IMG/VR virus record: IMGVR_UViG_3300020608_000013
Coordinates: 1-64,000 of that record
Length of the DNA stretch: 64,000 nucleotides
Strand: one strand, 5' to 3'
The notes under the pieces: generated by a model
The model's database searches: none
Seen by the model: only the letters and a program-made list of their open reading frames with translations
Told to the model about the DNA's origin: nothing
Position numbers and translations under genes: made by a program
In this document: positions 1 through 60,098 of the stretch, piece after piece
How positions within the stretch are numbered: position 1 is the stretch's first letter
How the letters are laid out: every line of letters begins with the position of its first letter

Positions 1-106
1 CTCGTTCCTTCGTAACTCGTACAATACATTACAACACAAGGTATAAAAATACAGAGTGAAAAATAGGCAAAAAAAATAACATAACGAATAGGTATGCCTT
101 AAGGGT

Positions 107-1291
107 TTACTCTAGCCAATCGCTTAGATCGAAATCATTGCACGCAACCCGAAGACGTTCCTCATAACTTTCCTCATCACAGTGAATAATATCGTCGTAT
201 TCTCCTAGTAGTACAAACAGTTGTTTATCCTCGTTAATGTAGTATTTGTCGATATTGTTATGTGTCCATGTCAATGGTGACTTAATTTCAGCTATATGCC
301 CACCCTCTTCCAGATGGGACTCTACTACCTTCTTGTCAACTCTGGTGTACCAACCATCATTAAGGTCAGTGTAACCACTTTGCAAAAGATCGATTAGTTT
401 GCGTAATGCGCTAGCTGCTGTTTGTCGATCGCCCTTTCTCCACTGTCTCCCTAGTTTGTAATCGATCGTGTACCGAACTATTGTGCTAAGCTCCACACGG
501 AGATTTACACGCGGCGTGATGGATAACATGGCTGTTTCTTTGTAGAGGGTATGTTTACCTTCTACAGAGTCAATCAACTGCTCTCTATCGAGCTTCTCGA
601 GAGTCTCTCCTTCACTGAGGAGTGGGGGTTTGTTCTCCCCTAAAAATAATTGACACTCCTCTCTCAACACACGAAATGCGTCGTCGGAATCGTAGTCAAA
701 CTCTTCGCAAAGATCGTTGATTGTTTCGAGTAATGTGGTGGGGTAATTTAGCCCCCAGAAAAGTTGTTGAAGATGTGCCGAATCCTCCACCTCTTTGTCC
801 TGGTAGGTTAATATATAGCGACCATCGTCACTACCATTAATAGTAGCAATACCACTCAACGCCTTTGACATCCAGAGGTACGGGGGTACTTTAACTTGAA
901 GTTCGTCGTCTTCAGAGTAACCAATTTCAAAGACTTCAAAGATTTCTTTGTAGGTGTTAAGCGATACTCTTGTAGTATCTAAGTACGTACGCGCTTCCAA
1001 TGGTAACGCGTTGTCAAAGATGGTATCGGTCAGTGCTTTAACTGTACCCAAATGATCGACCCCATCGTACTTTTCCTGTAGATGGTCAAGTGTTGCGGTT
1101 AGGGTGTGATGATCCACTTCTCCCATCAATTCTACGAACGCGTGTCCGCAAACATTACCGTCTTTTTCCTTTCTTCCATTAATGTACGCGTTAACAATTC
1201 GTTCGATAGCCTCGTATGTTTTTTGACAAACATAGTTGCAAAGATCGTCTTTATTGACCGATAGACCGTTGGTGGTTAAGTATAATGACAT
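107..1291 (-). CDS. hypothetical protein (~394 aa)
   Basis: Long ORF. ATG at 1291 has GGAG upstream (the track starts at TTG 1303). No recognisable motif. Confidence 0.75.
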   Translation of the reverse strand: MSLYLTTNGLSVNKDDLCNYVCQKTYEAIERIVNAYINGRKEKDGNVCGHAFVELMGEVDHHTLTATLDHLQEKYDGVDHLGTVKALTDTIFDNALPLEARTYLDTTRVSLNTYKEIFEVFEIGYSEDDELQVKVPPYLWMSKALSGIATINGSDDGRYILTYQDKEVEDSAHLQQLFWGLNYPTTLLETINDLCEEFDYDSDDAFRVLREECQLFLGENKPPLLSEGETLEKLDREQLIDSVEGKHTLYKETAMLSITPRVNLRVELSTIVRYTIDYKLGRQWRKGDRQTAASALRKLIDLLQSGYTDLNDGWYTRVDKKVVESHLEEGGHIAEIKSPLTWTHNNIDKYYINEDKQLFVLLGEYDDIIHCDEESYEERLRVACNDFDLSDWLE

Positions 1292-22400: not shown

Positions 22401-22781
22401 AGTCACAATGGCTTTAACTGTCCGTAAGCGGAATTCTTTATAGGTTTCCTCCCCGTAGGGCTTGGTTAATATCATAGCCCCTATCATGATATTATCGTGT
22501 ATACGTCTGTAACGGTGGTCTGACCGCCGCCATGTATCACTTATATCTAACCAACCCTTTATAAAGTCTTGGAAACCTGGCACCCGTGTACTTTTTTCTA
22601 ATAAATCTTTTTTCGCCCTCACAAGGTGTAGTAGAATCAACTCTTTGTTGAATCGATCGAAGGGTAGGTCTACTATGTCGTGGTCGTTATGGATTAGTGC
22701 ATTTATGTCTTGGGGTCTTTTATAAACCATCTGTATAGATGGGTATCTGGCTTCAGCGCGTGTTTTTGTGATGTTGCTCAT
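16473..22781 (-). CDS. very large hypothetical protein (2102 aa) between portal and nvRNAP beta genes
   Basis: Uninterrupted 6.3-kb ORF with globular-looking termini and a P/E/D/T-rich middle. No recognisable catalytic motif. Confidence 0.8.
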   Translation of the reverse strand: MSNITKTRAEARYPSIQMVYKRPQDINALIHNDHDIVDLPFDRFNKELILLHLVRAKKDLLEKSTRVPGFQDFIKGWLDISDTWRRSDHRYRRIHDNIMIGAMILTKPYGEETYKEFRLRTVKAIVTAAVLATRESLYKGLVGAEALDIIPLLENALFAECKELHNKICRKGMYPTWKTETQLAFPELLYWDYDRAAEPTAAVIDINRGYLKELGYDEKCPPPCIEGYPEGNKNARLIPGYPYHEANIFEHYFCFEINRATGTIQSSVIFARSITNLNIGEYYKQMAYLQEVGYHAVINNNNDIFDYGKEARAGTLDANKIMKKPRHILGGDNPPVPFTKRVSLHDLHQEKKEGVGTDTLSNLRGSGNNAHILPLNKTGDMTNMNTVFDNSGLAALATPIGTGRSSHRQQTNPNNRELYDKIRNAPYGIIRYLREKLGYDSKSELFSNLHAVTQELYDEAVADVKKRRAEYEACITNSVQQNSFSNNEGAERIYEARYNRIPKLGLPNNIPAHPCKATDSEIEEAIGKFRPNSRAHVPSYDYFVGGFDMSAVTVKEMLEYVYKRTPGRLYMDDRPYDFIFALHLGRAVLTTNAQRYVEYFNVNKTTDDNYIEIPPMVTKEEYDALLAKLTAEDQHVPEPTVVEEKPVVKESSVEDLSQLSININPGDSSPKTHKSKQRTEPYAMGDDEFPLSKPDEAALAETVKDGGSVVSFGYGVGDQRVSVSCKTFVDNPASTYSNTLEEETARREKEMVVNRNRLASVLGEMDSFIEARKEQLVPENDLIPLCDLRGRATEKPINVNADDLAKVYEAYKAKGFYKLFHDKAALPYPSPERLVKDDLVRPEYLTPYLGINIEEDYGVLLDKDEAHDFMQGDILCDQYGAPYVETGQPISQHYRPYLKQGIEFGEQVLSPRSLDILRERVRPDIDYIHPAREVVVDVEGHFVHASEDIAYYMTLKDTDDGFFNRCFSVNPDSGRKWYDERAFLIDNHLKPMHPKLREIAKRYDAKKLERINQCIQTKGANPIVEISTEVCTRHSWLSTKKHCELWPNDCDVLGAYMLLEPLKYVNVGKDHSIAFDSFVNDGMVAHKGAELPKLALDIHAILDVVNDNLGTEAHKRLLQRLKNAFANRIQRLRIGAEDQETLRSLHHIWVDASIDTLKKCGKQFSFTIPKSFVEHQPAPIPGYTIHLDPTPSVAEGPIIKERPMSEEQRELTSMMLEHAETPDPFEDVPRLRVKTAQGHEAVLNDREAVRYAGVTPAERTLGKFDNGRGEILTGSKYDVTEQYADPSSIRYADEVTDDTSTPVKKEASSATLLPDEFTQVDTIEQQLQSKAEWAARNGFSNVQDDRKTPSKEGTAERGVKPPLTDDYLIQEINNIINKAKADNYSEAHCGHLDMVISTAEKFAIDNPHLSEFLNAYSDYYFSITLDKDNPHLCPTQEQLDTLNPFKTVRHDRPKVEDSAYVSGFDSDIPSHGILPTLDQSEPTIAEPDPVVEQTNTVKEKPTVVMGEDGYQYHTIEGVDAEVVMEMFLEYINSKKENVPFSVICTMLYHQLKYPIEAYDERLRVLDGHLSRSRRSKAILPPLRDEKPKGPRKSFKPTDDTISKEIANNLKEHGKRKSVAAVESEPVSNTVDTTASKANVVVDDTPSTTRLGAEEVKALRGLIKNFSEVNLTDLIETSVAKAIEQKISAQPTVDTIDRAEETDPEVLGASLPGGASAKLKPIEKELVAAKTAPIENEEVLREVIAEELTNSTGLPTIDAGNFASLVTSARMEREWVELPARIVVGTTSEKHFGQAEHEGLVTELEGMTLSGKLDKLRALHEEGKLPKFLKRLVLRLEKDMIVQLREIFEIDIKPSKLKLLEKECINLLRKIICDNMIGKYLIAYDTYIEQLNTTFIPNDEGFATPDEIYKATGVTVQYVTNKELIDESDEEDSDVITPEKSSTVVQYSEDDELGDLDFLAEDDLRISQEVNKAIKLSNEGEEIADETYIESDVSQANEPLPAHFTECQHVDHVATTIPYALSVTSDIGVDLGGLPDYKYIQVNGAGDTTARLAKVMIDHASLYRKSYHAYVIVDDENNAYQIQPILGNEDTFAIRLNNDFWRT

Positions 22782-25469: not shown

Positions 25470-27749
25470 CTATGGCGTTGTGGTAGCGGGGTCTTCTACT
25501 GTTGGGTCTGTGCTGTAATTTAACATTTTAGTTAGCATAGCAGATTCAACACCAGTAATAGATAAGTCAGCCATAACAACAGTATCCATTACATGGGTAA
25601 AGCGAGGTTGTACACACACTTCACGATTTGTTACACCATTACGCTTAATAGGTAAGATGCTTGTAGTCTCAGGTGCGAAGGAGAACGTACCAGGTTTTAA
25701 AGGGTTCAAGTCTTTAGAGTTTGATGGTACGTCAATACACATGATCACACGATCTTTAAACTCTGGGTAAAGTACATCAGCGATGACAGGTTTAGCAAAC
25801 TGAGGGCCTAGTGTACGGAAGTCGCCTTCAATCATCATATACTGGCTCAGATTATATGATGTAGCGATTTTAGGTACTAGTTTCACAGGTGCGCCACCGT
25901 TTAGGCGAGAAGCCACATACTCAATTTCACTTTCTTCTACTAACCGATATAATGTTTCACGCAAGATGTTCACGATGGCTTCACGAGTATCGCGTACTAA
26001 ATCACCACTACTACGTGAATCAACAATATCTGGTAAATGATATTCTTGGCGAATGTAGGCACGGTTAATCAATAAGTCAGAAATACCGAACGCTTGAGGG
26101 TTAACCACCTGATGATCTTCAACACCTACTGTACGGTGTAATAGATCACTACGGTTTAATAGGGCACGCGCAGCGTTAGCGTTAGCTTCAACATGTGTAC
26201 CTTCAATTAAAGTCGCTAGGTCGCTGGTATCTGTCTTATCGTCACTATCTACAGGGTGTAGAATCGTTAAAGGTTCGCGGAAAGGAACGTTATAACGAAC
26301 AGCAAATTGAGTCGACCCTAATAAACGACCACGCGCACTTTTATTGGCTAACGTACGGTTTGCGTTAATTTTGTAGTAGCTTTCACAAGTTTGGAATAGT
26401 GTCTCGATAGCCTTAAAGGTCGCACTATCTTTTGCTAAGACTTCACCATCTGGACCTACAACACTACCTAGTTCAACAATGATGCTGGTAATAATGTGAT
26501 TACCTGTCTCAACATTAAACTTACCATCAACAATCATCATCACGCGTACTTTAAGATCATTGTCGACCACTGCACTTAATGATGTTAATGCTGCATTACC
26601 GACACCCTTAGTATCTTTATGGATCGTAAGGTTAGCTGTCTCAAAACTCAACGCCATCTCACGGCTCTCACCTTGAGTAGTGTGCGTGAAGTTGCTGAAA
26701 GGCATGTCTTTCACTGGGAAGATGATCGCATCGTCACCAATTTTACATAACACGCTGTTTAAAGCAAGTGATCCTGGATCAACGTCATGGGTAATGTCAG
26801 GCTTACCCTCACCTAACATATGATCTGTTGCACACAGGCTAATATAACCCATACGACGACCAGGTTTCAAGAACGAGGTCATGACTGGTTCTTGGTTAGT
26901 AACGTCACGTAATTTAGGTTCTACAACATCTTCAGGTGCAAAATAGTCTTTTGTACTTTCTTTATACACAGGAATCATTTCTGTGACGTTGCTTTCTAAT
27001 AAGTGCATGTCACTACCCGCACGTAGTAAGTTACGACGGTTGCTGTCGAACGGTGTACCATCTGTTTCGTGCAACTTATCATCTTGTACAAAATGTACAG
27101 GTGCGGTGATTACATAACCAATAGAGTTTGGTGAAATGATGTTAGGCTGGAAGAATGCTTGCGATAACGCATCTTGAGCAGGTGCATGTAAATTATACTG
27201 GATGGTATAACTTTCGGCAACTTGTGTCTCAGTTTCATTGTAAGCTTCAAGTGAAGCAATGTTCTTCAATTCCGTAGAACGACTTAGTGAAACATTAGTT
27301 GTTTCACTCATACCTGTAAAAGCAGCCGTTTCTAACCCTACAGTAGGTACTGCGTCAGGTGTAGCTAACGAACTACGTTTGATATTATGGGTCAAACCAG
27401 CACCAATCGCAGCAGCCTGTAATTGAGCGTTCGTATAGGTAAATGGTGTACCATCACCTTCACTCATATTGTTCAACGAGAAATCGGTCTCAAGGCTAGC
27501 TGTCTCGATAGACATGACCACTTCATCAGTAAGTTGTTTTAAACGTTCGTGTGTGTCCGTTAAAAACTTCTTACCTGAATGTAGCATTTCTGGAGACGAG
27601 CTTTCTAAACTAAAAAGTACTTTCTCTACAGATTCAGGTGTATGTGTGTTGCCCAAATGAAGCATTGTGCGATCATGTAATTGATCTAGCATAGTACCAC
27701 TACCGACTTCAAGCGGAGTGTTATCGAATAAGTTGTTAATGTTAGGCAT
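25470..27749 (-). CDS. major capsid protein (phiKZ gp120-like)
   Basis: 759 aa. The propeptide carries SLE/GLE prohead-protease motifs, then SLEAYNETE...SYTIQYN, QDALSQAFF and REVCVQPRFTHV. Adjacent to gp119/gp118 homologs. Confidence 0.92.
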   Translation of the reverse strand: MPNINNLFDNTPLEVGSGTMLDQLHDRTMLHLGNTHTPESVEKVLFSLESSSPEMLHSGKKFLTDTHERLKQLTDEVVMSIETASLETDFSLNNMSEGDGTPFTYTNAQLQAAAIGAGLTHNIKRSSLATPDAVPTVGLETAAFTGMSETTNVSLSRSTELKNIASLEAYNETETQVAESYTIQYNLHAPAQDALSQAFFQPNIISPNSIGYVITAPVHFVQDDKLHETDGTPFDSNRRNLLRAGSDMHLLESNVTEMIPVYKESTKDYFAPEDVVEPKLRDVTNQEPVMTSFLKPGRRMGYISLCATDHMLGEGKPDITHDVDPGSLALNSVLCKIGDDAIIFPVKDMPFSNFTHTTQGESREMALSFETANLTIHKDTKGVGNAALTSLSAVVDNDLKVRVMMIVDGKFNVETGNHIITSIIVELGSVVGPDGEVLAKDSATFKAIETLFQTCESYYKINANRTLANKSARGRLLGSTQFAVRYNVPFREPLTILHPVDSDDKTDTSDLATLIEGTHVEANANAARALLNRSDLLHRTVGVEDHQVVNPQAFGISDLLINRAYIRQEYHLPDIVDSRSSGDLVRDTREAIVNILRETLYRLVEESEIEYVASRLNGGAPVKLVPKIATSYNLSQYMMIEGDFRTLGPQFAKPVIADVLYPEFKDRVIMCIDVPSNSKDLNPLKPGTFSFAPETTSILPIKRNGVTNREVCVQPRFTHVMDTVVMADLSITGVESAMLTKMLNYSTDPTVEDPATTTP

Positions 27750-38460: not shown

Positions 38461-39738
38461 TCAATCTCCTTTACGCAAATGGAGTAAAAGTAGTAAAATG
38501 GGTATGAAGTAGTATTGTTGCAATTTTGTTAAATTGAATATTTCTTTTGAAAGTAATGCCAGATTATCGATTAAAAGTGATTTATTTTTTAACCCATCAT
38601 GAATGGTTTTCTCGAAAAGTGTTTTAGCGACACCCTGATAAAACTCATCGTTAAACAAATACGGTTTGAAAGACACTAAAGGGTAATATTCGTTAACTTC
38701 GCTTAATAAATTTTCTCCCTCGTATTGCTCTAGAATAACCGAATCTTCAAGCGTATCTTTATCGAACGTAAGGTAGTGGGTGAGACCTATTAACGAACTA
38801 ACATGGTCGGACAACCAATGGCCTGTGTATACTTTACGTTGAGCTACTTTAGCCGTCTGCATACACGCCTCTAAATGCTCATATTCGCGTTTCTCAAGCA
38901 CGTCCCATAGATTAACATAATTTTCATCATCGTCGTTATGACGCACCGCATAGGCGGCTAGATTTGGACGTATCCCTAACGCGATAACAAAATTGTTCAC
39001 CCACGCATCGTAGTACCACGTCGTCACATCCTTGTCGGTGAGGAAAATTGTTTTGTAAATTTTGTTACGGTTATCGTAAAAGCAATTGTGGTAGAAAACT
39101 TGAAGTTTAGCTTGTAGCTCTTCTAGGGTATTGAGTCGACTATACTCCTCTTTAGTCACTAAGGGTAGTTTATTATACTTTAGCCGATCTTTCACATAAT
39201 GGTAAGTTTTATATACCTTACTTTCTAATGCAGCAAGCGTCTCCTTATCTACATCATCGTAAAGTTGAAAACTTATAACGTACAAAGAGCGTTTATCCGC
39301 AGCTAGTTTTTCTGACCCATATACTTGAAAAACACTCTCTTCAACAGAACCTGTGTTTGCTGTGAACATGTCACCAATAGAAGGCACTACACCACTATGC
39401 ACAAAACCAACACCCTTCAACCCTTTAGTGTTCGATTCTTTATCATTTTCATACTCTACCGCATCTTTTAAATAGATGGGGTAGTTTAATATCTTTTCAA
39501 ACGCTTGGTTTATCGAAGATTGGTGGACATCGTAATGGTCGGTAGGCGCGTTATGTGACTCTCGTTGCCTATAGTAGGCGTTGGTCTCCCAGACCTCACC
39601 ATCTATATAAGGTACTGAGCTTAAATAAAGTTCGTCTTGCGAGTGGGTAAAGAGACGATCTGAATCTGTACTTAAGGGCGCATGTTCAGATTTAGGCTCT
39701 AAACGCTTTCGCGGGTTTAGTGTACTTACTATACTCAT
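38461..39738 (-). CDS. virion structural (neck/connector) protein (phiKZ gp99-like)
   Basis: SSVPYIDGEVWETNAYYRQ, GVVPSIGDMF and LESKVYKTYHY, plus gene order. Confidence 0.72.
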   Translation of the reverse strand: MSIVSTLNPRKRLEPKSEHAPLSTDSDRLFTHSQDELYLSSVPYIDGEVWETNAYYRQRESHNAPTDHYDVHQSSINQAFEKILNYPIYLKDAVEYENDKESNTKGLKGVGFVHSGVVPSIGDMFTANTGSVEESVFQVYGSEKLAADKRSLYVISFQLYDDVDKETLAALESKVYKTYHYVKDRLKYNKLPLVTKEEYSRLNTLEELQAKLQVFYHNCFYDNRNKIYKTIFLTDKDVTTWYYDAWVNNFVIALGIRPNLAAYAVRHNDDDENYVNLWDVLEKREYEHLEACMQTAKVAQRKVYTGHWLSDHVSSLIGLTHYLTFDKDTLEDSVILEQYEGENLLSEVNEYYPLVSFKPYLFNDEFYQGVAKTLFEKTIHDGLKNKSLLIDNLALLSKEIFNLTKLQQYYFIPILLLLLHLRKGD

Positions 39739-41260
39739 TGTTATGTCCTATTGAAATAATGTTAGTCGCCATAACCGTGTACATTTTTAAATCGTCGAGC
39801 GGTAATTTAATTATCAACTCGAATAAAGTTCGTAGAATAGACTCTCTATCCTCTACGCTATACGATTCTATTGTTTTCAAGCGATTAAATTGTGGGTCTT
39901 CAAATAACGTTTGGTTAATATCCTCAAGAATAATTTTAAGCGCGTCTACGTGATTTACGAACCGAAGAAGGTGCTGTCGATCTAGTTTACTAAGGTCTCT
40001 GAGCACACTGAACTTAACACGGTACATACGTCGTAAATCTAAATCCATCGACAGTTTAACATTAAGACAGTTATCGATCTCAATTAAGCGCCCGTCTATG
40101 AGGCGTTCGTTCTCGTAGATAGAGATGTGGAGTAGCGATTGAAACTCTTTTGTGATATACTCACGCTCTACTTCGCTAATGAAATCAATGATGTGTTTAT
40201 TGATGTTCAACACGCCTAGTTCATTCAGATTGAATAGAATGTCGTTCTTATTCGTTATCTCACATAGTGCAATGAAGAGGGGGCGCATATAGGGATACTC
40301 ACCCCGTAATGTAAATTGGTCTGTTTCTGGTAATCTTACACAAGGGAGCGTTTGATTCGGCACGCCCATTTGTGAAAAGTATTTCATCCTAAAACTATCA
40401 GCATCGTAATAGAAAAGATTCTTATTATATTCGCCATCTGTCACCCAATTATAACATTCCTCGGGGAGTAGTTTGTTATACACCATAATAGGGTAGTCAG
40501 CCAACATCTCGAACACGCGACTAAATCGTAAAGTTAATGAAAACTTTAAGTCATAAAAACGGTCTGTTTCATTGACCTCAATTTTCTCAGGTCGTTCCTC
40601 ATCGCTAAACGTTAATAGTCCCATCACATCTCGCTGGATTTCGTTAATACCGATTATTGTACCATTCCCGCTAAGATTTTTGTATAAACTATAACGTCCA
40701 GTAAGGTGTTTATTAAGATACTCGATAAAGTGACCTTGATTAACCAATCTTGATTTATTTTTATAAACATAAAATAGTAAATTTAACAGCCCTACAGGGA
40801 TTTGGTAATAGTAGTTTAACTTTAACATTAGTGTACCCATATCTCTACCCGTGCGGGCTAATAATAGGTCACTAATTTGATTAACTTTATCCCTACTCGT
40901 TGTTTTATAATTAATTTCAAATTCTAACGTAGTGTCGATGTACGATAATCGAGCGTGGACTAGCACATCACTATCTTTAAAGACGTACGGGTAAACATTA
41001 TGGAGGGCTTCAGTGTGGTTAAATGTCTCGACATGGCTTTTATCCACTACATCTACCATCATTATATCGTCGCTAATGTTAAGCTCTTCGTCCTTACTCG
41101 TTACTCGTTTAGCTCTAGTCGCTTGGTTGTGGTGATATTGACGAATAGTTTTAACGCCCGCGATATTCAACAGCTCTTTCAATTGTGTTAAAGTATCGTT
41201 AACTACGGGGTTTATTACAGTACGCTCTGTTTCCTTGACTTGTTCTATTATATTAACCAT
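39692..41260 (-). CDS. virion structural protein (phiKZ gp98-like)
   Basis: YPYVFKDSDVLV...YIDT, YYYQIP, YPIMVYNKLL and VRLPETDQF. GGAGA SD before ATG 41260. Confidence 0.72.
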   Translation of the reverse strand: MVNIIEQVKETERTVINPVVNDTLTQLKELLNIAGVKTIRQYHHNQATRAKRVTSKDEELNISDDIMMVDVVDKSHVETFNHTEALHNVYPYVFKDSDVLVHARLSYIDTTLEFEINYKTTSRDKVNQISDLLLARTGRDMGTLMLKLNYYYQIPVGLLNLLFYVYKNKSRLVNQGHFIEYLNKHLTGRYSLYKNLSGNGTIIGINEIQRDVMGLLTFSDEERPEKIEVNETDRFYDLKFSLTLRFSRVFEMLADYPIMVYNKLLPEECYNWVTDGEYNKNLFYYDADSFRMKYFSQMGVPNQTLPCVRLPETDQFTLRGEYPYMRPLFIALCEITNKNDILFNLNELGVLNINKHIIDFISEVEREYITKEFQSLLHISIYENERLIDGRLIEIDNCLNVKLSMDLDLRRMYRVKFSVLRDLSKLDRQHLLRFVNHVDALKIILEDINQTLFEDPQFNRLKTIESYSVEDRESILRTLFELIIKLPLDDLKMYTVMATNIISIGHNNEYSKYTKPAKAFRA

Positions 41261-41329
41261 AGACAATCTCCTAAATAACAAAATATAAACATGCCGAAGA
41301 GAACACCCCGACATGTTTAAACGTTACAT

Positions 41330-43459: not shown

Positions 43460-44636
43460 TATCCTCCTTTTTTAATGCTTTTTGAACTGAATTAATCGCG
43501 TTGACGGTATCGTCGTGAATTGTCGTGAGTGTCTTAAAATTAGCTAATCTATTCTTAACAATGAACGTGACCTCGTTACTGATCTTAACATGTAAGTCAT
43601 AGAAATTATTAACCAAATCTAATACTAATCGTCCTACTTCAGTATCCGCCATGTCTTCAGGGACTTTCGTCTTCTGCATGGTCTTGATAATCTTCTCTAA
43701 CCCTTTAAACGACTTACTAAACCGATTACTATGTAATTCCAGCGCTCGTTGGTTAGTGGTACTGGTGAAACTTTTTAGTAGATCAAAAACCTGAGTTGAA
43801 GGTGGGTTAAATGCTAAAACATCTTTATCTACTTTGATAGGTAGTTTGAACACCCCAATGTTTGAAAATACAACAGGCTCGCTGTCATAATATTTCGTTT
43901 TTAATGAATGTGTCATTGTGTAACTGTGGAGACTTTCTGTACGAGGTAAAGTCAGCGTTGTGGAAGCCCCCTCACCTCTTTTAAAATTGACCTCACCTGG
44001 TAATGCTAATGTCTTAAAAATGTTTACGACACCCGCATCTTTTGACACACCCTCACGCACACTATTTACATTGCACAACCTTTCAACAGTGCGGTTTAAC
44101 TTATCGACCTCTACACGATATTGCTCAACCAACTTGTATTCTAAATCTTTCAAGAACTCATGTTCATCATAGATCATGCGGACGGTTTTATTAATATCAT
44201 ACCCTTCCTCAGCCATGACTAAACTAAAATACTTGCTCTTTTGAGAAGAAAGGATAATGCCGCCAGGGTCTTTTAGTGTAACGCCATCAATATCACCCCT
44301 TTTCTTATTGATTGCTTCTTCAACAATCTCATTACGCAATACAGTAATATCGATTAATTTATCACTCTTACCACGTAACTCATCTTCAATATTTAAAGGC
44401 TTACCTTCACCCATAATTTCATTCGCCAATAAACGTACTATACTCCCATAGACCTTGATGAATATTTTTAGCACCAGTGAAAGGACACGCGTAAACATTT
44501 CAGCAAACGCATTAGCACCTTTACGAAAGTTGCTTTCGTTACTAACTGTTTGTTGAACGTTAAGTGAGCTAAAACATTCTGTTTGAACGGCGAGTAATTT
44601 ACTACCGATAACAAGGTACTGATCTTCTTTAGTCAC
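43443..44636 (-). CDS. head/inner-body paralog (gp93-97 family)
   Basis: Propeptide ending VSNES followed by an amphipathic helix, and a C-terminal helical region like its neighbours. Confidence 0.6.
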   Translation of the reverse strand: MTKEDQYLVIGSKLLAVQTECFSSLNVQQTVSNESNFRKGANAFAEMFTRVLSLVLKIFIKVYGSIVRLLANEIMGEGKPLNIEDELRGKSDKLIDITVLRNEIVEEAINKKRGDIDGVTLKDPGGIILSSQKSKYFSLVMAEEGYDINKTVRMIYDEHEFLKDLEYKLVEQYRVEVDKLNRTVERLCNVNSVREGVSKDAGVVNIFKTLALPGEVNFKRGEGASTTLTLPRTESLHSYTMTHSLKTKYYDSEPVVFSNIGVFKLPIKVDKDVLAFNPPSTQVFDLLKSFTSTTNQRALELHSNRFSKSFKGLEKIIKTMQKTKVPEDMADTEVGRLVLDLVNNFYDLHVKISNEVTFIVKNRLANFKTLTTIHDDTVNAINSVQKALKKEDNDDNA

Positions 44637-44642
44637 GATACT

Positions 44643-45710
44643 CTATCCTCTTTTTTGTTTCAAATAATATTCCGTCATGACGAATAAATAGTATTCAACA
44701 TGTGCCGCCAACTCTGCCTCAATCTCTAACGTCTTTGTTGAAAACTTAACCATGAACTGTACTTCCTTTGCCACTTGTTTAACTAATGCCCTTGTGAACG
44801 GAATACTACCACGCCACACTTTATTAATTTTCTTACTAAAATCATTAATTAGCGTAAGTTGATCTACACAAGCTTTATAATAACGGCGCAAATCTTGTTG
44901 GTAAAATTTATTACGATCTTGTTGCGTATAGTTTAATAAATAATCAAGCTCATCTGGTTTAGGTACTATAAAATCAGACATCTCTTTTACAGAGGGTCTG
45001 CCCGTTATCTCGACAATATCTAAATCGAGGTAATTGAATGTAAGCCCACCGTAGTCTTTCGATTCCTCTTTAGCAACCATTACTAAGTCAACGTTTTTAT
45101 CTTTAGTCGCCACAGGTAGATAGGCTAACGTATAAAAAGTAATATTCTTATTAACTGCCGTGACTAACGCGTGTGGCTCAACCACCTTAGCAAACGTCTC
45201 ATCAACAACGCTCAGTGTCGTTGACGAGGGTTTACCTCTAGTTAGTGATTCTAATACATCGTAGTAAGCTTCAAGGCGTTGTTGGATGGTATGGAGAACT
45301 GCTTTAGAAACGTTTGCTAAACGCATGTCTGCACGACAAATTGAGATTAAGGGATTTGGACTATCTTCTAACATATAGTAAGCAATCGTCTTATAATACT
45401 CCCCCTCTCTTTTTTCTAGGGTAGGTCGTAAGTCTTCTAGTGGGATAGGTCCTTTTAATGCATCGCGAGCTTCTCTTACATGTTCACCTAAAGGATACCC
45501 AAAGAAAACTTCCTTTTTAAGTTTAAGTTTACGCCGCGTCTCTAGCCGACTAATCGCGTCAAGAACTTTTTCTTTTGCTTGGGCAAAAATATTTAAAAGT
45601 CCCGCACTCTCAAGACTAGCCTCGCCAAAATGCTCATTTGCGACATCTTGGATTAGACTTTGGACAATACGACTTTCTTCATTTATAGACATATAACTAC
45701 GTTCCTTCAT
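44643..45710 (-). CDS. head/inner-body paralog
   Basis: ASLESAG cleavage motif and the shared C-terminal helix pattern. Confidence 0.62.
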   Translation of the reverse strand: MKERSYMSINEESRIVQSLIQDVANEHFGEASLESAGLLNIFAQAKEKVLDAISRLETRRKLKLKKEVFFGYPLGEHVREARDALKGPIPLEDLRPTLEKREGEYYKTIAYYMLEDSPNPLISICRADMRLANVSKAVLHTIQQRLEAYYDVLESLTRGKPSSTTLSVVDETFAKVVEPHALVTAVNKNITFYTLAYLPVATKDKNVDLVMVAKEESKDYGGLTFNYLDLDIVEITGRPSVKEMSDFIVPKPDELDYLLNYTQQDRNKFYQQDLRRYYKACVDQLTLINDFSKKINKVWRGSIPFTRALVKQVAKEVQFMVKFSTKTLEIEAELAAHVEYYLFVMTEYYLKQKRG

Positions 45711-45756
45711 TAATTTTAATCAATCTATGAAACATCGCTGAGTAGATCAAGCGATA

Positions 45757-45797
45757 AGGTTAGGTCGTATGGGCGCTATACCCATACGACCTAACCT
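45757..45797 (-). terminator. stem-loop terminator
   Basis: AGGTTAGGTCGTATGGG-cgctata-CCCATACGACCTAACCT, a perfect 17-bp stem. Confidence 0.8.
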
Positions 45798-45823
45798 AAC
45801 ATAAATCTAATTTAAAGTATTAT

Positions 45824-46945
45824 TTAAACACCTAAAGACCTTTTAGACCACAAGTACATTAGGGTTAAGTAAGCTACATTTTGCGAAACCAATTCATTCA
45901 ACACTTTAATTAGCGTCGTCGTTTGTGTTGTGCGATTTGTTATGTACTTCACAGCCTGATGAATCATTGGTAGTTTATCAATTGGCACAGTGTCTTTTAA
46001 ACTAAGCATCTCTTCACGCGAGTGATCTAGGAAACGGTTTGCTGACCGTCTATAACCTTCCCACATTTTCTCCAGCCTGTTCTCTAAGGGTAAGTCTGCA
46101 CACACCTCGCGCATCCCCTCCAAACCACTAGGGGGAGCGACATATAATTTTTCTGGAGTAGCTGGCTTGTCGCTCACCCCTGTATTCTGTATGTGAGGGG
46201 TTTGACAGACCACAGACCAATCGAAAAATACGAAGTGGTCTGTTTTCTCTTTGTACGTGTAGTGTACGCCCATCGGTAAAAGGAGTAAATCGAAACCTGT
46301 CTCGCCTAGATCATCCGTTTCAATAAGACCGTCAAGAGTGTTCTTAAAAGCACTTGCATGACCAGCGTCGTGAAAAACCACCTTTTTCGGATACTTTGAT
46401 CCATTAATTTGTTGCTTCCCATCAGGCTCGTAAGGCCTAGGCGGGTTGCCTTCTGCAATAAGTAAGATATTCTTTTGTAGTACCTCCATGTACGTCTGTT
46501 CCTTTACTATAAAAACATCAATCGCTTTAGCATACGCTTTATGTAGACGATTGAAGTGTTTTGTAATAGTAATTAACGCTTCAGGGTCGTCTTGACTAAT
46601 ATTAAGCGCCTTGAGTACACGCGTATGTTGTTCCACCCATTTTTCGTACCCTATATCAAAATCAAAATATTTGTTTCCCTTAACGTATGCAGTAGCGTAG
46701 TCTGCTTTTATCTCTTTTGGTTTAACTGTCTTTGAAACTAACGCCTGCAATTGCCTGCGTTTCTTACTAAGCCACTCACCGATCTTTTTTAAGAGTTCTT
46801 GCGCCATAACGTTTAACGCACTAAGCATTTTCCCAAACTTACCGCGACTTGATCCCTCATCGCTTTCAAGTCCTGTTAAAAGGATGTCTTGAGTGCCCGC
46901 CAGAATGAGTGTATTAACTTCACGAATATGGTCTTGTTTAGACAT
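45824..46945 (-). CDS. head/inner-body paralog
   Basis: EVNTLILAGTQDILLTGLES propeptide with GLE motif. C-terminal QNVAYLTLMYLW. Confidence 0.62.
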   Translation of the reverse strand: MSKQDHIREVNTLILAGTQDILLTGLESDEGSSRGKFGKMLSALNVMAQELLKKIGEWLSKKRRQLQALVSKTVKPKEIKADYATAYVKGNKYFDFDIGYEKWVEQHTRVLKALNISQDDPEALITITKHFNRLHKAYAKAIDVFIVKEQTYMEVLQKNILLIAEGNPPRPYEPDGKQQINGSKYPKKVVFHDAGHASAFKNTLDGLIETDDLGETGFDLLLLPMGVHYTYKEKTDHFVFFDWSVVCQTPHIQNTGVSDKPATPEKLYVAPPSGLEGMREVCADLPLENRLEKMWEGYRRSANRFLDHSREEMLSLKDTVPIDKLPMIHQAVKYITNRTTQTTTLIKVLNELVSQNVAYLTLMYLWSKRSLGV

Positions 46946-46962
46946 TTTAAATACTTCTTATA

Positions 46963-48120
46963 TTAGTCTAATTGATCTCTTGTATCGCTACTAATGAAAG
47001 CTGTCATATGCCATGCGTAAAGCGCTGCTAAATACGCAAGGTTCTTCTCAGCGTTACTGCTCAACCAAACCGCTATTTTACTCATGCTGGTGCGACGCTT
47101 GCCGATATAAGCCATGATAGCTGTTAAAAAAGCTTGTCCTTCATCATCTATTTTATCACCTAACTCAACAACAGATTTTTCAAACTTCTTAAGTATCTTT
47201 TCGAGTGTATCGACCGAATGGTTTTTCTTTGCGTTTTTTATATCGTAAGCCAAAACGGTTACAGCGCGTGCAAGTGCCTTCATTCCTCTAGGGTCAAGAG
47301 GTTCGTACGAATCGTTTAGCAGGGGTAGGTTAGCTGGTCGACGTGTAATATCGAGGGTTGTGAAGTTATATTTCGCACCTTTAAATATAATTGTTTCAAT
47401 ACCCGACTTTAACGTAGTGGTCATACCATCAACTTCATAGTCTGTCGTGAGCGTATTTCCTTTGCTATGAGCGTCTACTTTAGTATATAAACCAATTCCG
47501 ATAGAAGGGACAATACCATCATTAAACGTTAAGGTATTATCTATGTCGTCACTTAGACCGTGTTCCACTCTTCTATTTAGATTCTCAGGAGTTATACCCT
47601 GCACAATATTAATCGCACCCATACTTACGTTATAAAGGTGCTCTGCCTCACCCTTCATGTATTCCGTATATACCGACACATATCGATTATGGACATCTGC
47701 GGCATAGAGCGCCTTTTCATAGACACCATTTTCAGTACCTTCTATAAGATTAGGACGGTCGTCACTTCTATCTTTACGATTTAAAAGTGCCGTATGATAG
47801 TTCAACACCTCCTCTTCTAAAGTTGTTTTATCTAAAATGATTTTACCTCCATCATATACTTTCTCATACTTAGTATAGAACTCTTCTGTAGCCTTTTTAG
47901 TTACCATGGTGAGTATACGACCTATAGCTTGCTCAGCTTTTTCATTAAGCCATTTAAATAGTCGTTTAACAGCATCGTTAATTATTTTACCCAGTTTTTT
48001 GAGTAAACGTATAAACGCATGTTACCCATCGCTAAGAACGCCTTCTGTGCTGGATAACACAATACCTTGTGTTTTCGCTTGTAATAGGGTAGCGATCTCG
48101 TCTGATTTTATTTCTCACAT
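46963..48120 (-). pseudogene. head paralog whose N-terminal 71 codons carry two in-frame stops; intact ORF 46963..47907
   Basis: Reading from ATG 48120 gives M*EIKSDEIATLLQAKTQGIVLSSTEGVLSDG*HAFIRLLKKLGKIINDAVKRLFKWLNEK...TMVTKK, in frame with the 314-aa ORF. TGA is at 48117-48115 and TAA at 48024-48022. Confidence 0.75.
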
Positions 48121-48164
48121 ATACATAATAATTGTTAAACCTCTTGTTTGGATTCGTAACACCA

Positions 48165-48191
48165 AGACACTTATAGTAATTATAAGTGTCT
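48165..48191 (-). terminator. stem-loop terminator after 48227..49810
   Basis: AGACACTTATA-gtaat-TATAAGTGTCT, an 11-bp stem. Confidence 0.65.
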
Positions 48192-48226
48192 CTTTTTATA
48201 AAAAACTGCCTGTATAGTATAAACTA

Positions 48227-49810
48227 TTACACAGTAGGCACTTCATTCTCTATTGTGGTAATAGTATCCTCAATGAACTTATATATTCTAGCCCAATATT
48301 TAATGATGGTTGTCTGGTAAGCCACAATCTCACTTGCAATCTCATTCACTTGTGTAATACGTTTATTGTACCGTGGGGTTGCATCTTGTATTTCCTGTAA
48401 AACAAACACGCCTTCAGGTGTGTTGGGATCAAAATTCTTTTCAATCAATTTTTCAGCAGCTTCTTGTGCTTTAATACTCGCCATATACTCCTCTACCACC
48501 TTCTCAACTTTCTTAGAGGGTTTCTTTACGCCATCGAGCACATCTTCTAACGCTCCACTACCTCTTTTAAAGATAAGTGTAGTGGTAGTTGTGTCGAACA
48601 TTCTTTTTGGACCTATGTACGATCTGGGGTAATGTAGTTCTGGTAAACTCAGCTCATTAAACCTCTTACCACGAATATCATAAAAACCCATACCCTTTGG
48701 CGTAGGGAAATGTTGAATATCTTCAGGTAATAAATACTGTTCTATACCACTATGTACATCGAACGCGTGCGACCAACGTGTGTAACCGTAAGACCGATCA
48801 AGTTTTTCTTTAGACGGAGGTGATTTAACCCATTCTTTAATTACCCCAGTAAAGCGATCAGACGTTCTTTTACCGTAGTCATATATCCCTACTAACATGT
48901 TTTCACTAGCAAGCCAATCTTCTTTAATAGTTTCTGCCAGAAAATCCAACGTTGTGTTACTAGGTGTGATTGCTTTCCCAATATGCGGATTAAATAGACG
49001 TTGTAAATATGCATCGAGGTCTTTTGGTAGGGCGATGTTATCTAAACGATGGTTGTCGCCCTCACGACTATAGGTAGGTGATAACGACCCATCTTTAATC
49101 CCAGATTTAACCTTCACAACCTCTCTTTTATATGCCTCTCTATTAGCTTCATATAAAGCCAGCGTTTCTTCTTGTTTCCGCTTACGTTCAACTAATTCCC
49201 TTTCCTCTTCTTCTTTCTTTTTCTTTTCAGCGACCATCTTCGCTTCCAGCTCTTCCCGTTCTTTATCAAGTCGAGCCTTTTGTTCAGCTAAAGCTCTAGC
49301 TTGACTATCAGTCTCCTGCTCGCTTCCCTCTTCGTCTACTGACACCACTCGCTCCTCAACACCCGCTAGCGCTTTTTCAAGTTGTCTGATCGTGGTGTTT
49401 CGTCTACGGAGAGCGTTTTCCAAATCTTCCACTTCTATACGATGCTCTTCCTTCAGCTTAGCCACATCTGTGCCATGATGTAGTGTCTGTGTTGTAAGCT
49501 CACTTTTGAGACCACTATTAGCCTCTTCTGCTTCCTTCAACTTAGTCTCCAACTTTTTGATTCGAGCCTCTAACATTTGACGTTTATTACTAAAAAGGTT
49601 GTCGGGGAGTTGTTTAAGACGAGCTAGTCCGCGCCCTAACATTTTAAAGAAACTCACCACTTTCTCTCGTAAGTAACTAAAAAACTTTTTAAGTAATTGT
49701 AATAAACGCGAGCCGTCCCCAGAAGCGCTTTCGTTACTATGCAAGATAGTACCTTGCGTGTGTAAGCTAAGCATTAACGCTACTTCACTAACTTGGTTAC
49801 TTCTCATCAT
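48227..49810 (-). CDS. head paralog with charged coiled-coil insertion
   Basis: EVALMLSLHTQGTILHSNES propeptide and a ~165-aa E/K/R-rich segment. AAGGA SD before ATG 49810. Confidence 0.65.
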   Translation of the reverse strand: MMRSNQVSEVALMLSLHTQGTILHSNESASGDGSRLLQLLKKFFSYLREKVVSFFKMLGRGLARLKQLPDNLFSNKRQMLEARIKKLETKLKEAEEANSGLKSELTTQTLHHGTDVAKLKEEHRIEVEDLENALRRRNTTIRQLEKALAGVEERVVSVDEEGSEQETDSQARALAEQKARLDKEREELEAKMVAEKKKKEEEERELVERKRKQEETLALYEANREAYKREVVKVKSGIKDGSLSPTYSREGDNHRLDNIALPKDLDAYLQRLFNPHIGKAITPSNTTLDFLAETIKEDWLASENMLVGIYDYGKRTSDRFTGVIKEWVKSPPSKEKLDRSYGYTRWSHAFDVHSGIEQYLLPEDIQHFPTPKGMGFYDIRGKRFNELSLPELHYPRSYIGPKRMFDTTTTTLIFKRGSGALEDVLDGVKKPSKKVEKVVEEYMASIKAQEAAEKLIEKNFDPNTPEGVFVLQEIQDATPRYNKRITQVNEIASEIVAYQTTIIKYWARIYKFIEDTITTIENEVPTV

Positions 49811-51062
49811 CTTTATTTCCTTTTTTGTTTGTAAGGTCACGTATCAATAAATCTATTCCGTCATTATACAACTTACCATTAGCTTCAAATACGCCGTACC
49901 ATACTTTTAAAATAAACCGTTGGTAATTGATCATCTCCTGACAAATGTTCGTCGCACTTAAAAACGCTTTATCAAGTTCAGTACAAGCACGCACCACACA
50001 CTTTAGTAACAACTCGTTACTTGTAGCCTCAATCTTTTTAATAAGCACTTCACGAAACTCAAGGTGCTTCTTAATCGTTTTATCAAGATCACTCATGTCT
50101 ATCTGATATTTAAAATGTACCTCGTCAAGTTTTTCACAAAGTAAATCTACTTCGTCTTGAGGCGTATTATAGACCTTTATTTCAGTATCTAGCCCATCAA
50201 TATTACTCTTCTCTAACTTAAGGAAAGGTAATCCATTACTATCTAGCGTACTTTTTAACGAAACTTGCTGGACAACATCTCCCCCTACAAAAGCTTTAAT
50301 CGCGTAATCTTTATCTTCCGATAATTTCTTAGCATATTTTTTATTTAAATCACGATCGAAGAGTTTATTAGTGAACGTCTCCTTTGTACGACTAAAGGCC
50401 GTGTCGGCTGGTGTCAATTGCGGTGGTTTATCAATCGCTTGTTTAATCACATTGAAAAACGTTGTCATTAAGGTCGCTTGGTAGTCGATCACCACATTAC
50501 TAATATAATTAGATATACCGAACTCTTTTTCTAGTATTGCGCTAAAACCCTTTATACTAACCGCTTTACCGCTGGGTAGACCCCCATTCTTGGCAGCGTA
50601 CAGTGCATTGAGGTAGCGTTTTGTCACCTTCGGGTAGGTAGGGTTAAGGTACGTAACATCTTTCGCTATAACCGCCATCGTCTTTTCAATTTCGTCTAGT
50701 GTTACAGCGTTCTCTTCCTGTTGTTTTTTATAAGTTTCAAGTTTTTCACTAATATCACCCAGCGCTAATGCAGCCTCTCCAACACGCTTCTTACTTTTCT
50801 CCACTGTCTCTTTAGTCAACTTAGTCGCGTTACCTTTCTTCTTAAACAACCCTTTCGGTATTTTCTTTATAGCCTCTATTTTTTTATTAATGTAGTTAAT
50901 ACCACTAAGAACCTTCTCTTTAAAGTATCGTCCCAGTTTCTTAAACATTTCTATAAGACGAGTAAACGTACCCTCATCTTTCTCTAGTGTGTAGAACGCG
51001 AACTCTTTTTCAAGCGCGATCTGACCTAGTTTAATTTGCACTATTTCGTCGTTATTAATCAT
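49797..51062 (-). CDS. head/inner-body paralog
   Basis: IALE/YTLE motifs followed by FTRLIEMFKKLGRYFKEKV, like the neighbouring paralogs. Confidence 0.65.
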   Translation of the reverse strand: MINNDEIVQIKLGQIALEKEFAFYTLEKDEGTFTRLIEMFKKLGRYFKEKVLSGINYINKKIEAIKKIPKGLFKKKGNATKLTKETVEKSKKRVGEAALALGDISEKLETYKKQQEENAVTLDEIEKTMAVIAKDVTYLNPTYPKVTKRYLNALYAAKNGGLPSGKAVSIKGFSAILEKEFGISNYISNVVIDYQATLMTTFFNVIKQAIDKPPQLTPADTAFSRTKETFTNKLFDRDLNKKYAKKLSEDKDYAIKAFVGGDVVQQVSLKSTLDSNGLPFLKLEKSNIDGLDTEIKVYNTPQDEVDLLCEKLDEVHFKYQIDMSDLDKTIKKHLEFREVLIKKIEATSNELLLKCVVRACTELDKAFLSATNICQEMINYQRFILKVWYGVFEANGKLYNDGIDLLIRDLTNKKGNKDDEK

Positions 51063-51136: not shown

Positions 51137-52462
51137 CTATTTATCGTCTTTATCAGAGCTACCGCTTTTATCTGATTCGTATTTCTTCAAACTACCGTTA
51201 ACATAATCTAACGCGCCGTAAACTGCGGTTGTACTTAAACCAGCCGCATTACGCGTATAGTTCGCATAGGCTTGCGATGCGTCGTTAACCATATTCTTAA
51301 GCTCTTTAGTTGCTTTAGAATTATCGCCTGATTCTTTAACCAGTTGTTTCAAAAGCTCTTGTGCTTTCTTACTAAAGTTCTTCAAGTCTCTAGAATTACG
51401 CTCGTAACTTTTGATTGCTTTAGTTACGCTTTCTGCTGATGATAAAATACCATTCATATCAGATGTTGATAAAATGTCAAGCGCATCACCTTTAGGCGTA
51501 ATAGCTTCATCTGCTTTAGTATCCACTACAACAATACCTTTAGTACGACGAGACTCTTCCCCAACACTATAAGACATATATACCTTAGTGCCGTTTACTA
51601 ACGTTTCTGTCGCTTGTGTTTTATAAAGTAGATTGTTATCGTCTTTACCAAGTTTACTTTCTTTCATACCTTTAAACTTAGCATTACTGAAGATTTTAGC
51701 GATGGCGATTTCTAAATTAGCCATGTGTCGGTTATTTACACTCTTACTAATTTCATCATCTAACTTCTTAATGACATCGTTAAAAACTTTCTTAAACGCA
51801 TCGGCGTTATCCAACAAGTCTTTATGCTCGCTTAAGACATCTTTAACTGCTTGCGCTGACAGTTTTTTAGATTTAGTACTAAATGCCTTTTCAATCGTTT
51901 TACTCTTGAATTCAGCATCTTTCTTAACCTTTTTCGCTTTCTTTACTTTACCTTTTAAAGAATTAATCGCACCTGTCATGCGACCATTTTGTGTGAAGAC
52001 TTTAGTAAGCGCTTCATTAACCATTTCCCATAGTTTAGCAAGAGCTGCCGCTACCGATTTACTAATACCTTCGTTAGAATCTTCTAATGAAGCGATGGCT
52101 GTCTTAGTCTCTTCTAAACGACTATTAAAGCGACCATAATCTTCTAGACCGATCGTTTCTCGCAAATCCGAGCGATCGATATGATCATAAAGTGTCTCAC
52201 AACAAGCGACCATGAAACGTGCTTCAGTGTCTGTCATTCCACCATCATCTAACGTGAGACGAGCACTAGCAAGAACAGATTCAAGCGCTGTCAATGTAAC
52301 AACATTCTTATCAATATCATCAGCTAACAGTTCGCAATCGTCGAAATCTGACTCTAGACTCCATTGCTCTAAACCTGTATCGTCAAAATCAGCGTCAGGT
52401 ACTACTGGGTTTGTGTATGAATTCTCTAGTGCGAAAGATGCAACATTTAAAAAGTGGCTCAT
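51137..52462 (-). CDS. major inner head protein (phiKZ gp93/gp162/gp163 family)
   Basis: Acidic propeptide with repeated ALE/GLE/SLE motifs, then ALESVLAS...GGMT..EARF and IGLEDYG...SRLEET..AIASLE..NEGI. Confidence 0.82.
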   Translation of the reverse strand: MSHFLNVASFALENSYTNPVVPDADFDDTGLEQWSLESDFDDCELLADDIDKNVVTLTALESVLASARLTLDDGGMTDTEARFMVACCETLYDHIDRSDLRETIGLEDYGRFNSRLEETKTAIASLEDSNEGISKSVAAALAKLWEMVNEALTKVFTQNGRMTGAINSLKGKVKKAKKVKKDAEFKSKTIEKAFSTKSKKLSAQAVKDVLSEHKDLLDNADAFKKVFNDVIKKLDDEISKSVNNRHMANLEIAIAKIFSNAKFKGMKESKLGKDDNNLLYKTQATETLVNGTKVYMSYSVGEESRRTKGIVVVDTKADEAITPKGDALDILSTSDMNGILSSAESVTKAIKSYERNSRDLKNFSKKAQELLKQLVKESGDNSKATKELKNMVNDASQAYANYTRNAAGLSTTAVYGALDYVNGSLKKYESDKSGSSDKDDK

Positions 52463-55084: not shown

Positions 55085-56176
55085 ATGTCTAGTTTAGCTG
55101 GCCATATTGATGACTTCTTTAAATCGAAACCAATAGGGTCTATTAAGAGTGCCTTCACAAATACTTTGTACGGCATCAACCACCGCCAAGTGAGACCTGC
55201 TTTACTACAGAATAGAGATTTACAAGGCCTATTCTTTATTGTTCGACCTCAACTCAATTTTCAATCGGACAACCTTCGCAATATGCGTAAGTTATACCCT
55301 TTGTTAAACGATAACTCATTATCACTACAACGTTATATAAGGTGTATGCTCGATCCGCGTCAAATGCTAGGGTATGATAAAGTCCCACCAATAGATTGCC
55401 CTTTAGTCGATAACGAACTAGCCTTCATACCCCCTTTCACTAACCTAATAAAAAGTTGCTCTGGTTGGTTGGATAGTGTGACTGAACTTTTTATTTCAAA
55501 ACCAGGTCTCTATAAGGAATCCTATATGCAAGTAGATTCCATTATAGATCAATACAATACGTACGACTTAGACTTCACTTTTAGAAATATACGTAGCGAC
55601 CCCATCATTTCATTAATCAATTATTGGCGGTATTATCAAAGCTATGTCTTCCAAGGGAAATTACTACCTTACCCAGATTTCTGGATAGAGAACGAGTTAG
55701 ATTATATGACTAGAGCATACCGACTTGTACTGAAAGAAGACCGCTACCATTTAAGTAAAATTGCTGCAACAGGTGTGTCTATCCCCATTAGTTCACCTAA
55801 TGGTATGTTCTTCGATTTTGACGACAGTGTACCTTATTCAGAACAAACGAAAGAATTCACCATACGATTTAAAAACCTTGGAATGCAAATTCATGATGAC
55901 ATACTTATCAAAGAATTTAATAATAGTGTACAAATTTTTAATCGAGCAATGTTAGATGAACATCGTGAAGAACGTATGGTAGAGATACCTATTGCGTGGT
56001 TACAATACTTCAACCATCGAGGTTATCCACGTATCGATCCTGATAAATATACCCTAGAATGGTGGATTAAGAAAGATGTATTCCATCGTCGTGTTGACGC
56101 TTACCTGAGTAACAAATACATATTCAATGATCGTCATAAAGATACCTTAAGAGAAATTGCTAGAGGAGTCAACTAA
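55085..56176 (+). CDS. baseplate/tube-like structural protein (phiKZ gp88-like)
   Basis: TLYGINHRQ, GLFFIVRPQLNFQSDNL, RCMLDPR, FRNIRSDPI and ELDYMTRAYRLVL. Divergent from gp89. Confidence 0.78.
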   Translation: MSSLAGHIDDFFKSKPIGSIKSAFTNTLYGINHRQVRPALLQNRDLQGLFFIVRPQLNFQSDNLRNMRKLYPLLNDNSLSLQRYIRCMLDPRQMLGYDKVPPIDCPLVDNELAFIPPFTNLIKSCSGWLDSVTELFISKPGLYKESYMQVDSIIDQYNTYDLDFTFRNIRSDPIISLINYWRYYQSYVFQGKLLPYPDFWIENELDYMTRAYRLVLKEDRYHLSKIAATGVSIPISSPNGMFFDFDDSVPYSEQTKEFTIRFKNLGMQIHDDILIKEFNNSVQIFNRAMLDEHREERMVEIPIAWLQYFNHRGYPRIDPDKYTLEWWIKKDVFHRRVDAYLSNKYIFNDRHKDTLREIARGVN

Positions 56177-59192: not shown

Positions 59193-60098
59193 TTAAGTTG
59201 TAGGCGTAGCACTTTCTGCGGCAGGAGCTTGCGTTTGAATAATATCTTCACGCGCATTATCCACTGTCTCTTTATAACCCTTAACGGCTTGTTCAAGATC
59301 AGGGTGGATTTTCTCAATGAACTGTTTGCGACGGTATGCGTTAGCGTTAATCGTGTTCAGTGTGTCAAGAATGTTCTGCGCCATCACATTAGACCCGATT
59401 GTGAACTGGGTCAATCCTGTGAATGGGATTTCTAACTTAACAACTTCACGAGCTTCGGCTTTATTACGCTTACCTTCGATAGGTCCTGTAGTAGTAGGGA
59501 ACATGTTTGTGACAATCCAACTCCATTGCACTTTCTTATGCATAGCGTCAGTTGCCATATACAACATGGTTGCTGTGTACTGATCTGCTAATAAATCAGC
59601 AGGTCTGTTTTCGTCAGGCATTGTCCCAACACTAGCAAACTTTGAGTCGGGATGCATACGACCCATAGTGATCCAATGATAGAAGAATTGTCTGAACGGA
59701 CTACCATTTTTCTCTACAAGTGAGTGAACGATCTCAGATTTAGTCTCAACAACATCAATAATCTCTTGCTGTACTTTAGACCCGCCAACAATGTTAGTGT
59801 CATCATCTGTCTCTACTTCAAGCCCACCCTGTAAACCATCAATTTCAATACTATGTGTTGTCATGATAGCATTAAGGGTACCTAACCACGCTTGTGCGTT
59901 AGGTTGTCTAGTCATGAACAACGGAGGTTCTAAAAGAAATGGGACAATATTGGTTGTAACTTGCGCTTGGTTATTAACCCATTCGTGCAGGTCAACATTC
60001 CACCCTTGCTGCCCCCCGAATTGCGGGTTAAGCGTAGGGTGGAGTTGACCTTCATTGAAAGCCTCGCCACCCATAAGCGCGTCGGTAATTCTTGCCAT
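59193..60098 (-). CDS. tail tube protein (phiKZ gp30-like)
   Basis: MARITDAL, GGQQGW..DLHEWVNNQA, LLEPP, IDGLQGGLEVE, EKNGSPF..FFYHWI, DLLADQYTATMLY and WIVTNMFP..TG match the phiKZ tube family. Confidence 0.85.
   Translation of the reverse strand: MARITDALMGGEAFNEGQLHPTLNPQFGGQQGWNVDLHEWVNNQAQVTTNIVPFLLEPPLFMTRQPNAQAWLGTLNAIMTTHSIEIDGLQGGLEVETDDDTNIVGGSKVQQEIIDVVETKSEIVHSLVEKNGSPFRQFFYHWITMGRMHPDSKFASVGTMPDENRPADLLADQYTATMLYMATDAMHKKVQWSWIVTNMFPTTTGPIEGKRNKAEAREVVKLEIPFTGLTQFTIGSNVMAQNILDTLNTINANAYRRKQFIEKIHPDLEQAVKGYKETVDNAREDIIQTQAPAAESATPTT

Follow-up and report, generated by a model that had tools for sequence, protein, structure and literature searches.

Two nonsense mutations interrupt a putative head-protein paralog in one strain of a phiKZ-like jumbo phage

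A gene in the head-protein cluster of an uncultivated jumbo phage is interrupted by two in-frame stop codons that are absent from all of the relatives that we found, and three of the five differences that separate this genome from a nearly identical sibling assembly lie within it. We consider it likely that this is a very recent, strain-specific knock-out of one propeptide-bearing head paralog, probably under selection. The gene would be one of several diverged paralogs with a common N-terminal layout, in which a propeptide ending in an S/G-x-E protease site precedes a basic helix, and its knock-out would have come about by two point mutations, AGA to TGA at codon 4 and TAT to TAA at codon 35, with an Asp to Gly replacement besides.

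The interrupted reading frame and its ancestral codons

The window, the whole stretch of 64,000 nucleotides analyzed here, covers the opening 64 kb of a record of 212,020 bp (38.7% G+C) from JGI metagenome 3300020608, contig Ga0213768_1050183, whose ends overlap by 141 bp. The source is an uncultivated phiKZ-like jumbo phage with a complete-looking assembly, which includes a PhiKZ_MCP capsid gene (25470..27749) and tail-tube-family genes (55085..56176 and 59193..60098), and in which translation table 11 gives a normal gene density with dense long ORFs. The 141-bp direct terminal repeat, found at window positions 1-141 and at the genome end, matches in length the largest default k-mer of MEGAHIT (141), and the number of the contig, 1050183, does not follow a sorting by length. 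Both points suggest that the repeat is probably not a physical one and arose where a circular path of the assembly overlaps itself. A 2102-aa ORF (16473-22781, minus strand) adjoins the head and tail modules and has no family in the precomputed Pfam list. Two other long minus-strand ORFs, 38461-39738 and 39692-41314, share 47 nt, and the upstream member of this pair carries the head-tail joining domains PF24214/PF24215; the shared stretch may reflect where the start of the 425-aa gene is placed, or may be a programmed overlap.

The interrupted gene comprises the following features:

46963..48126, minus strand: full ancestral gene, 387 codons plus stop, intact in P0001/P0004 and P0002, with two interruptions in the window
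48115..48117, minus strand: TGA, codon 4 from ATG 48126; ancestrally AGA (Arg), with A to T at 48117
48022..48024, minus strand: TAA, codon 35; ancestrally TAT (Tyr), with T to A at 48022
47651, minus strand: derived missense change at codon 159, GAT (Asp) to GGT (Gly); the outgroup P0002 has Asp
46963..47907, minus strand: residual 314-aa ORF from internal Met74 (P0003, the gene product in the public JGI annotation)
48140..48145, minus strand: AAGAGG, Shine-Dalgarno-like, 13 nt ahead of ATG 48126

Translation of the minus strand from ATG 48120 reproduced letter for letter the reading given in the preliminary description (M-stop-EIKSDE...SDG-stop-HAFIRLLKK...), which runs in frame into the 314-aa ORF. 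That description had taken ATG 48120 as the start and counted the stops as codons 2 and 33; the 88% identical relative P0002, however, starts at the ATG equivalent to 48126 and reads ACG at the position of 48120, so that ATG 48126, which lies two codons further upstream, is the conserved and probable start and the stops become codons 4 and 35. Ahead of the internal ATG 47907 there is only AGGT, which is weak and distant.

A search with the 314-aa ORF retrieved two natural proteins whose N-termini reach beyond both stop positions. One is near-identical (P0001, 399 aa as called, SRR11747015 in its Logan assembly) and recurs as P0004 on contig Ga0213770_1000009 (93,305 bp) of JGI metagenome 3300020607; the other (P0002, 379 aa, 88% identical) comes from ERR15087791. 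DNA alignment places Arg (AGA) and Tyr (TAT) at the stop sites of the window in both P0001 and P0002, and the 88% relative has the ancestral state at 48117, 48022 and 47651 alike. Four runs, which belong to two studies and include metagenomes of biofilms and hydrothermal vents, were compared over 44600-50400 by way of their Logan contigs, and all four have the same ancestral letters at these three positions. The comparison with closely related genomes that had been proposed thus returned an intact gene, with sense codons at both stop sites, in all relatives found. A comparison of the two intact relatives gives a dN/dS of 0.29 across the gene as a whole and of 0.17 in codons 1-35, which indicates coding sequence under constraint and not a frame that is open by chance. 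Close relatives therefore carry an intact and constrained orthologue, and the stops are derived in one lineage, as in a recent pseudogene or nonsense allele.

The stop allele is known from one assembly (3300020608). In a search of 47992-48147 against the indexed public runs, the best share of matching words was 0.54, which is the share overlapping neither variant site, and the stop-bearing words accordingly occur in no indexed run. The INPHARED phage collection gave no match by blastn or tblastn, and scans of IMG/VR and the JGI metagenomes, by protein and by an allele-tolerant DNA pattern that did match the known loci, gave near-identical records only. An exhaustive phmmer search of 1.8 billion representatives returned P0002 and three weak matches to long proteins, whose Pfam matches are low-scoring (coiled coil or repeat) and whose annotation is uninformative; P0002 is the sole true homologue among these representatives. 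JGI/IMG itself calls the 314-aa product on the contig of 212,020 bp, which means that the stops were present in the deposited record, and their addition to the window after deposit is ruled out.

The ancestral codons bear directly on how the stops arose. Each had been described as one C to T change away from a plausible CGA or CAA codon, and cytosine deamination of the phage DNA by a host defense had been suggested as the cause. The true ancestors are AGA and TAT, and the stops result from A to T and T to A transversions; together with the A to G change at codon 159, all three coding-strand changes in the gene are at A:T pairs, and none is C to T or G to A. The derivation by deamination is thus wrong and, with nothing but the guessed CGA/CAA ancestry in its favor, the probability of enzymatic editing is next to nil.

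Programmed readthrough or recoding, in which both stops are decoded and the full-length protein is still made, had also been raised, and the frame is indeed open and conserved across both stops. TGA is moreover the leakiest of the stop codons. However, the relatives all have sense codons, AGA and TAT, at the two sites, two different stop codons replace two different residues, and ARAGORN detected no tRNA gene, hence no suppressor, in the 212 kb. No other gene split by in-frame stops was seen, and gene density is normal under table 11. Readthrough is extremely improbable on these grounds, and we agree with the earlier argument that two different stops speak against a reassignment of the genetic code.

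Two further observations concern the variability of this gene. Fifteen nucleotides at window position 47714 (five codons, NGVYE) are absent, in frame, from runs X2, X4 and X5 and from P0002, and in the X5 strain the orthologue of the interrupted gene is about 8% diverged, compared with 0-3% for its neighbors. The surrounding sequence seems to change more slowly than the gene.

A predicted propeptide in a cluster of head-protein genes

The N-terminal region of the interrupted gene and the adjoining genes are as follows:

48043..48126, minus strand: codons 1-28, a predicted propeptide whose last residue is the invariant Glu of S-T-E (site of the phiKZ type, S/A/G-x-E)
47908..48021, minus strand: codons 36-73, conserved basic helix (HAFIRLLKKLGK...KWLNEK) in the intact relatives; behind the TAA in the window
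45824..46945, minus strand: intact paralog, 373 aa, with matching N-terminus and a G-L-E site
48227..49840, minus strand: intact paralog-like neighbor, 537 aa, with matching N-terminus and an S-N-E site
49797..51062, minus strand: neighbor, 421 aa, with related N-terminus and T-L-E
51137..52462, minus strand: phiKZ-type internal head protein (PF12699, E=8e-19)
48165..48191, no strand assigned: 12-bp perfect hairpin, intergenic, upstream of the interrupted gene, with a terminator-like score on the plus strand

The alignment of the upstream segment with paralog N-termini, claimed in the preliminary description, was borne out. In BLASTP, the intact relative matches the 537-aa neighbor with 36% identity over residues 3-60 (E=2e-5) and the 373-aa neighbor with 19% over 396 aa (E=3e-6). 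The N-terminus can be aligned with those of five neighboring genes, and in the resulting seven-sequence alignment the Glu at residue 28 is invariant within an S/G/T-x-E motif; six of the seven N-termini fit the sequence motif S/G-x-E. This pattern suggests that the predicted propeptide would be cleaved after S-T-E, seven residues ahead of the TAA at codon 35.

The PF12699 gene at 51137..52462 marks the cluster as one of head proteins. The interrupted gene itself has no family in Pfam or PHROGs, and P0001 had no match to the PF12699 HMM at the gathering score of the family, so that the protein is not filed in PF12699; hhalign against the PF12699 neighbor likewise gave no profile link (probability 3.5%). 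Neighbors in ESM-feature space include PF12699 clusters at 0.90, as a lead only, and a single-sequence AlphaFold model reached a mean pLDDT of 37. A T4-type prohead protease (PF03420) had no match in the genome, and none in the controls either, which makes this profile uninformative. The gene neighborhood and the N-terminal motif, the sole basis for a function, suggest that the protein works like a phiKZ-type packaged head paralog.

Such paralogs are described in giant phages, where their number varies widely (PMC5694885). Their conserved N-termini carry A/S-x-E sites, and in phiKZ and SPN3US they are processed by the prohead protease at S/A-x-E sites; the propeptides probably act like the capsid-targeting sequences of T4 (PMC5694885). 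Like phiKZ gp93-95/162/163 and families A and B of SPN3US (PMC5694885), the genes described here form a strongly diverged paralog cluster with similar N-termini and an x-E motif; a PF12699 gene adjoins the cluster, and the major capsid protein of the phage is of the PhiKZ type. Unlike the phiKZ and SPN3US families, the interrupted paralog has no profile-level similarity to PF12699, is known from sequence alone, and is broken in one strain.

Within the cluster, the adjacent 537-aa paralog is itself variable. In its Glu/Lys-rich coiled-coil part, a short repeat (49196-49230) interrupts the Logan contigs of the closest run, and a related strain has a 24-nt in-frame insertion behind 49283, which points to indel polymorphism in 49196-49290. 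Between this 537-aa gene and the interrupted gene lies the hairpin at 48165-48191, which the 88% relative preserves, with a change compatible with G-U pairing; it may act as a terminator or as a site of RNA processing between the head genes.

Concentration of recent changes in one gene

The genome was compared with 84,969 bases of the JGI contig from 3300020607 and with 28,454 bases of Logan contigs. From their adjacent IMG numbers, 3300020608 and 3300020607 appear to be sibling samples of one project. Only five differences and no indels separate the genome from the sibling JGI contig over the 84,969 bases, and with the gene intact in the sibling this supports the earlier proposal of a very recent inactivation. 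Two of the five are synonymous third-position transitions elsewhere (AGT/AGC at 37315 and TCG/TCA at 83833). The other three fall inside the interrupted gene, where they span 467 bp: two are nonsense, one is the Asp to Gly replacement, and none is synonymous.

This concentration is difficult to attribute to chance. Nonsense changes make up 4.65% of the possible substitutions in the gene, giving a probability of 0.006 for at least two among three. At a stage when 66 kb had been compared, the probability that a single 1.16-kb gene would receive at least three of the four differences was 2e-5, or about 1.5e-3 after correction for some 70 genes, values that carry an ascertainment bias because the window was flagged for its stops; the extension from 66 kb to 85 kb added only one background difference.

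Sequencing or assembly artefact, that is, three consensus errors in the 212-kb contig, would be consistent with changes seen in one assembly only and with variant words found in no indexed public run. The consensus of an assembler represents the majority of reads, and A-T transversions are, to our knowledge, not a typical signature of damage or of a sequencing platform. With only two other differences from the sibling, both synonymous substitutions, and no indels in 84,969 bases, the general error of the contig must be very low, and three errors inside 467 bp of a single gene are improbable. Given that the differences are packed into one gene of a nearly identical genome, we regard an artefact as unlikely, although it is the chief rival to a genuine knock-out.

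Neutral decay would offer another history, in which a first nonsense mutation arose by chance, left a pseudogene among at least five redundant paralogs, and was followed by two changes that drifted in. Several intact paralogs adjoin the gene, paralog numbers vary widely among giant phages (PMC5694885), and a pseudogene can collect changes of any kind. However, a fully neutral stretch of 1.16 kb would be expected to hold about 0.1-0.2 changes, a rough estimate from a background of two synonymous differences that leaves the neutral rate poorly estimated, against the three observed. The probability of two further changes after the first is about 0.01, and one of them would again have to be nonsense (4.65% chance). 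Simple decay after a first change is for these reasons unlikely.

Two other sources of change were considered and rejected. A diversity-generating retroelement does not fit, with no reverse transcriptase (RVT_1), no template repeat or second copy, and one of the changes at a coding-strand T. On the opposite strand, the derived T at 48022 (plus strand) turns an antisense TGA into TGT, which lengthens an antisense open frame in window 47906-48217 (plus strand) from 64 to 112 codons and yields a listed ORF of 103 aa; an antisense gene was dismissed, the lengthening being probably a coincidence.

A loss favored by selection would accommodate the packing of nonsense and missense changes into one gene of an otherwise almost unchanged genome, and could reflect, for example, escape from a host defense that senses or targets the gene, or escape from CRISPR targeting. 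In its most specific form, that the jumbo phage destroyed the gene between two sibling biofilm samples to escape a host defense sensing or targeting the protein or its DNA, this scenario is tentative and on balance unlikely. For the knock-out one stop would suffice; the two are redundant, which selection does not readily explain. When the ancestral 20-mers around each stop were searched against 185,579 species genomes, one gave no match and the other six chance matches that did not extend.

Phage escape mutants of related kinds are familiar, including loss of function in non-essential genes sensed by abortive-infection systems and point mutations that confer escape from CRISPR. As in such mutants, several changes here are packed into one dispensable gene while the rest of the genome is unchanged; unlike them, this case comes with no identified defense system, host or matching spacer.

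Consequence for the protein and biological meaning

Downstream of the TGA, the single in-frame start is a GTG, which opens a 14-codon frame closed by the TAA, and between the TAA and Met74 (47907) there are no in-frame ATG, GTG or TTG codons. The product can thus be at most the 314-aa remnant, which by its predicted sequence has neither the putative propeptide of codons 1-28 nor the predicted cleavage site, and which also lacks the conserved basic helix encoded by codons 36-63. This agrees with the earlier suggestion of a propeptide-less isoform, inasmuch as any residual product would be devoid of the propeptide.

By analogy with T4 capsid-targeting sequences and with SPN3US gp47 (PMC5694885), the remnant would probably not be targeted into the prohead, and loss of the N-terminus may thereby abolish packaging. 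In T4, internal proteins are directed to the prohead by a short N-terminal peptide, which the prohead protease subsequently cleaves off (Mullaney and Black 1996, summarized in PMC5694885); the N-terminus described here has no homology to these peptides, and the similar role that we propose for it follows from position and motif only. The laboratory amber mutant SPN3US 47(am1) (PMC5694885) offers a second parallel, since there too a point mutation to a stop lies in a head or ejection gene. In contrast to that mutant, the present one is natural, combines an opal and an ochre codon at the extreme N-terminus, and would lose the whole targeting region.

The kind of event is already known, an ordinary nonsense allele of a redundant phage gene, and it is notable only for the concentration of changes in one gene. 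For annotators, the public 314-aa call is the truncated remnant of a 387-aa gene. It is striking that one gene has three non-synonymous changes while the remaining ~84 kb has only two, both synonymous, and this pattern provides a concrete and inexpensive way to test by population genomics whether selection acts on a virion protein. The interruption also implies that, in one strain at least, the phage can do without this head-cluster paralog in nature, which bears on the question of which of the many head paralogs of giant phages are essential. If escape from a host defense were indeed the cause, the gene would be a case from nature of a phiKZ-like phage in which a virion protein is both dispensable and exposed to immunity.
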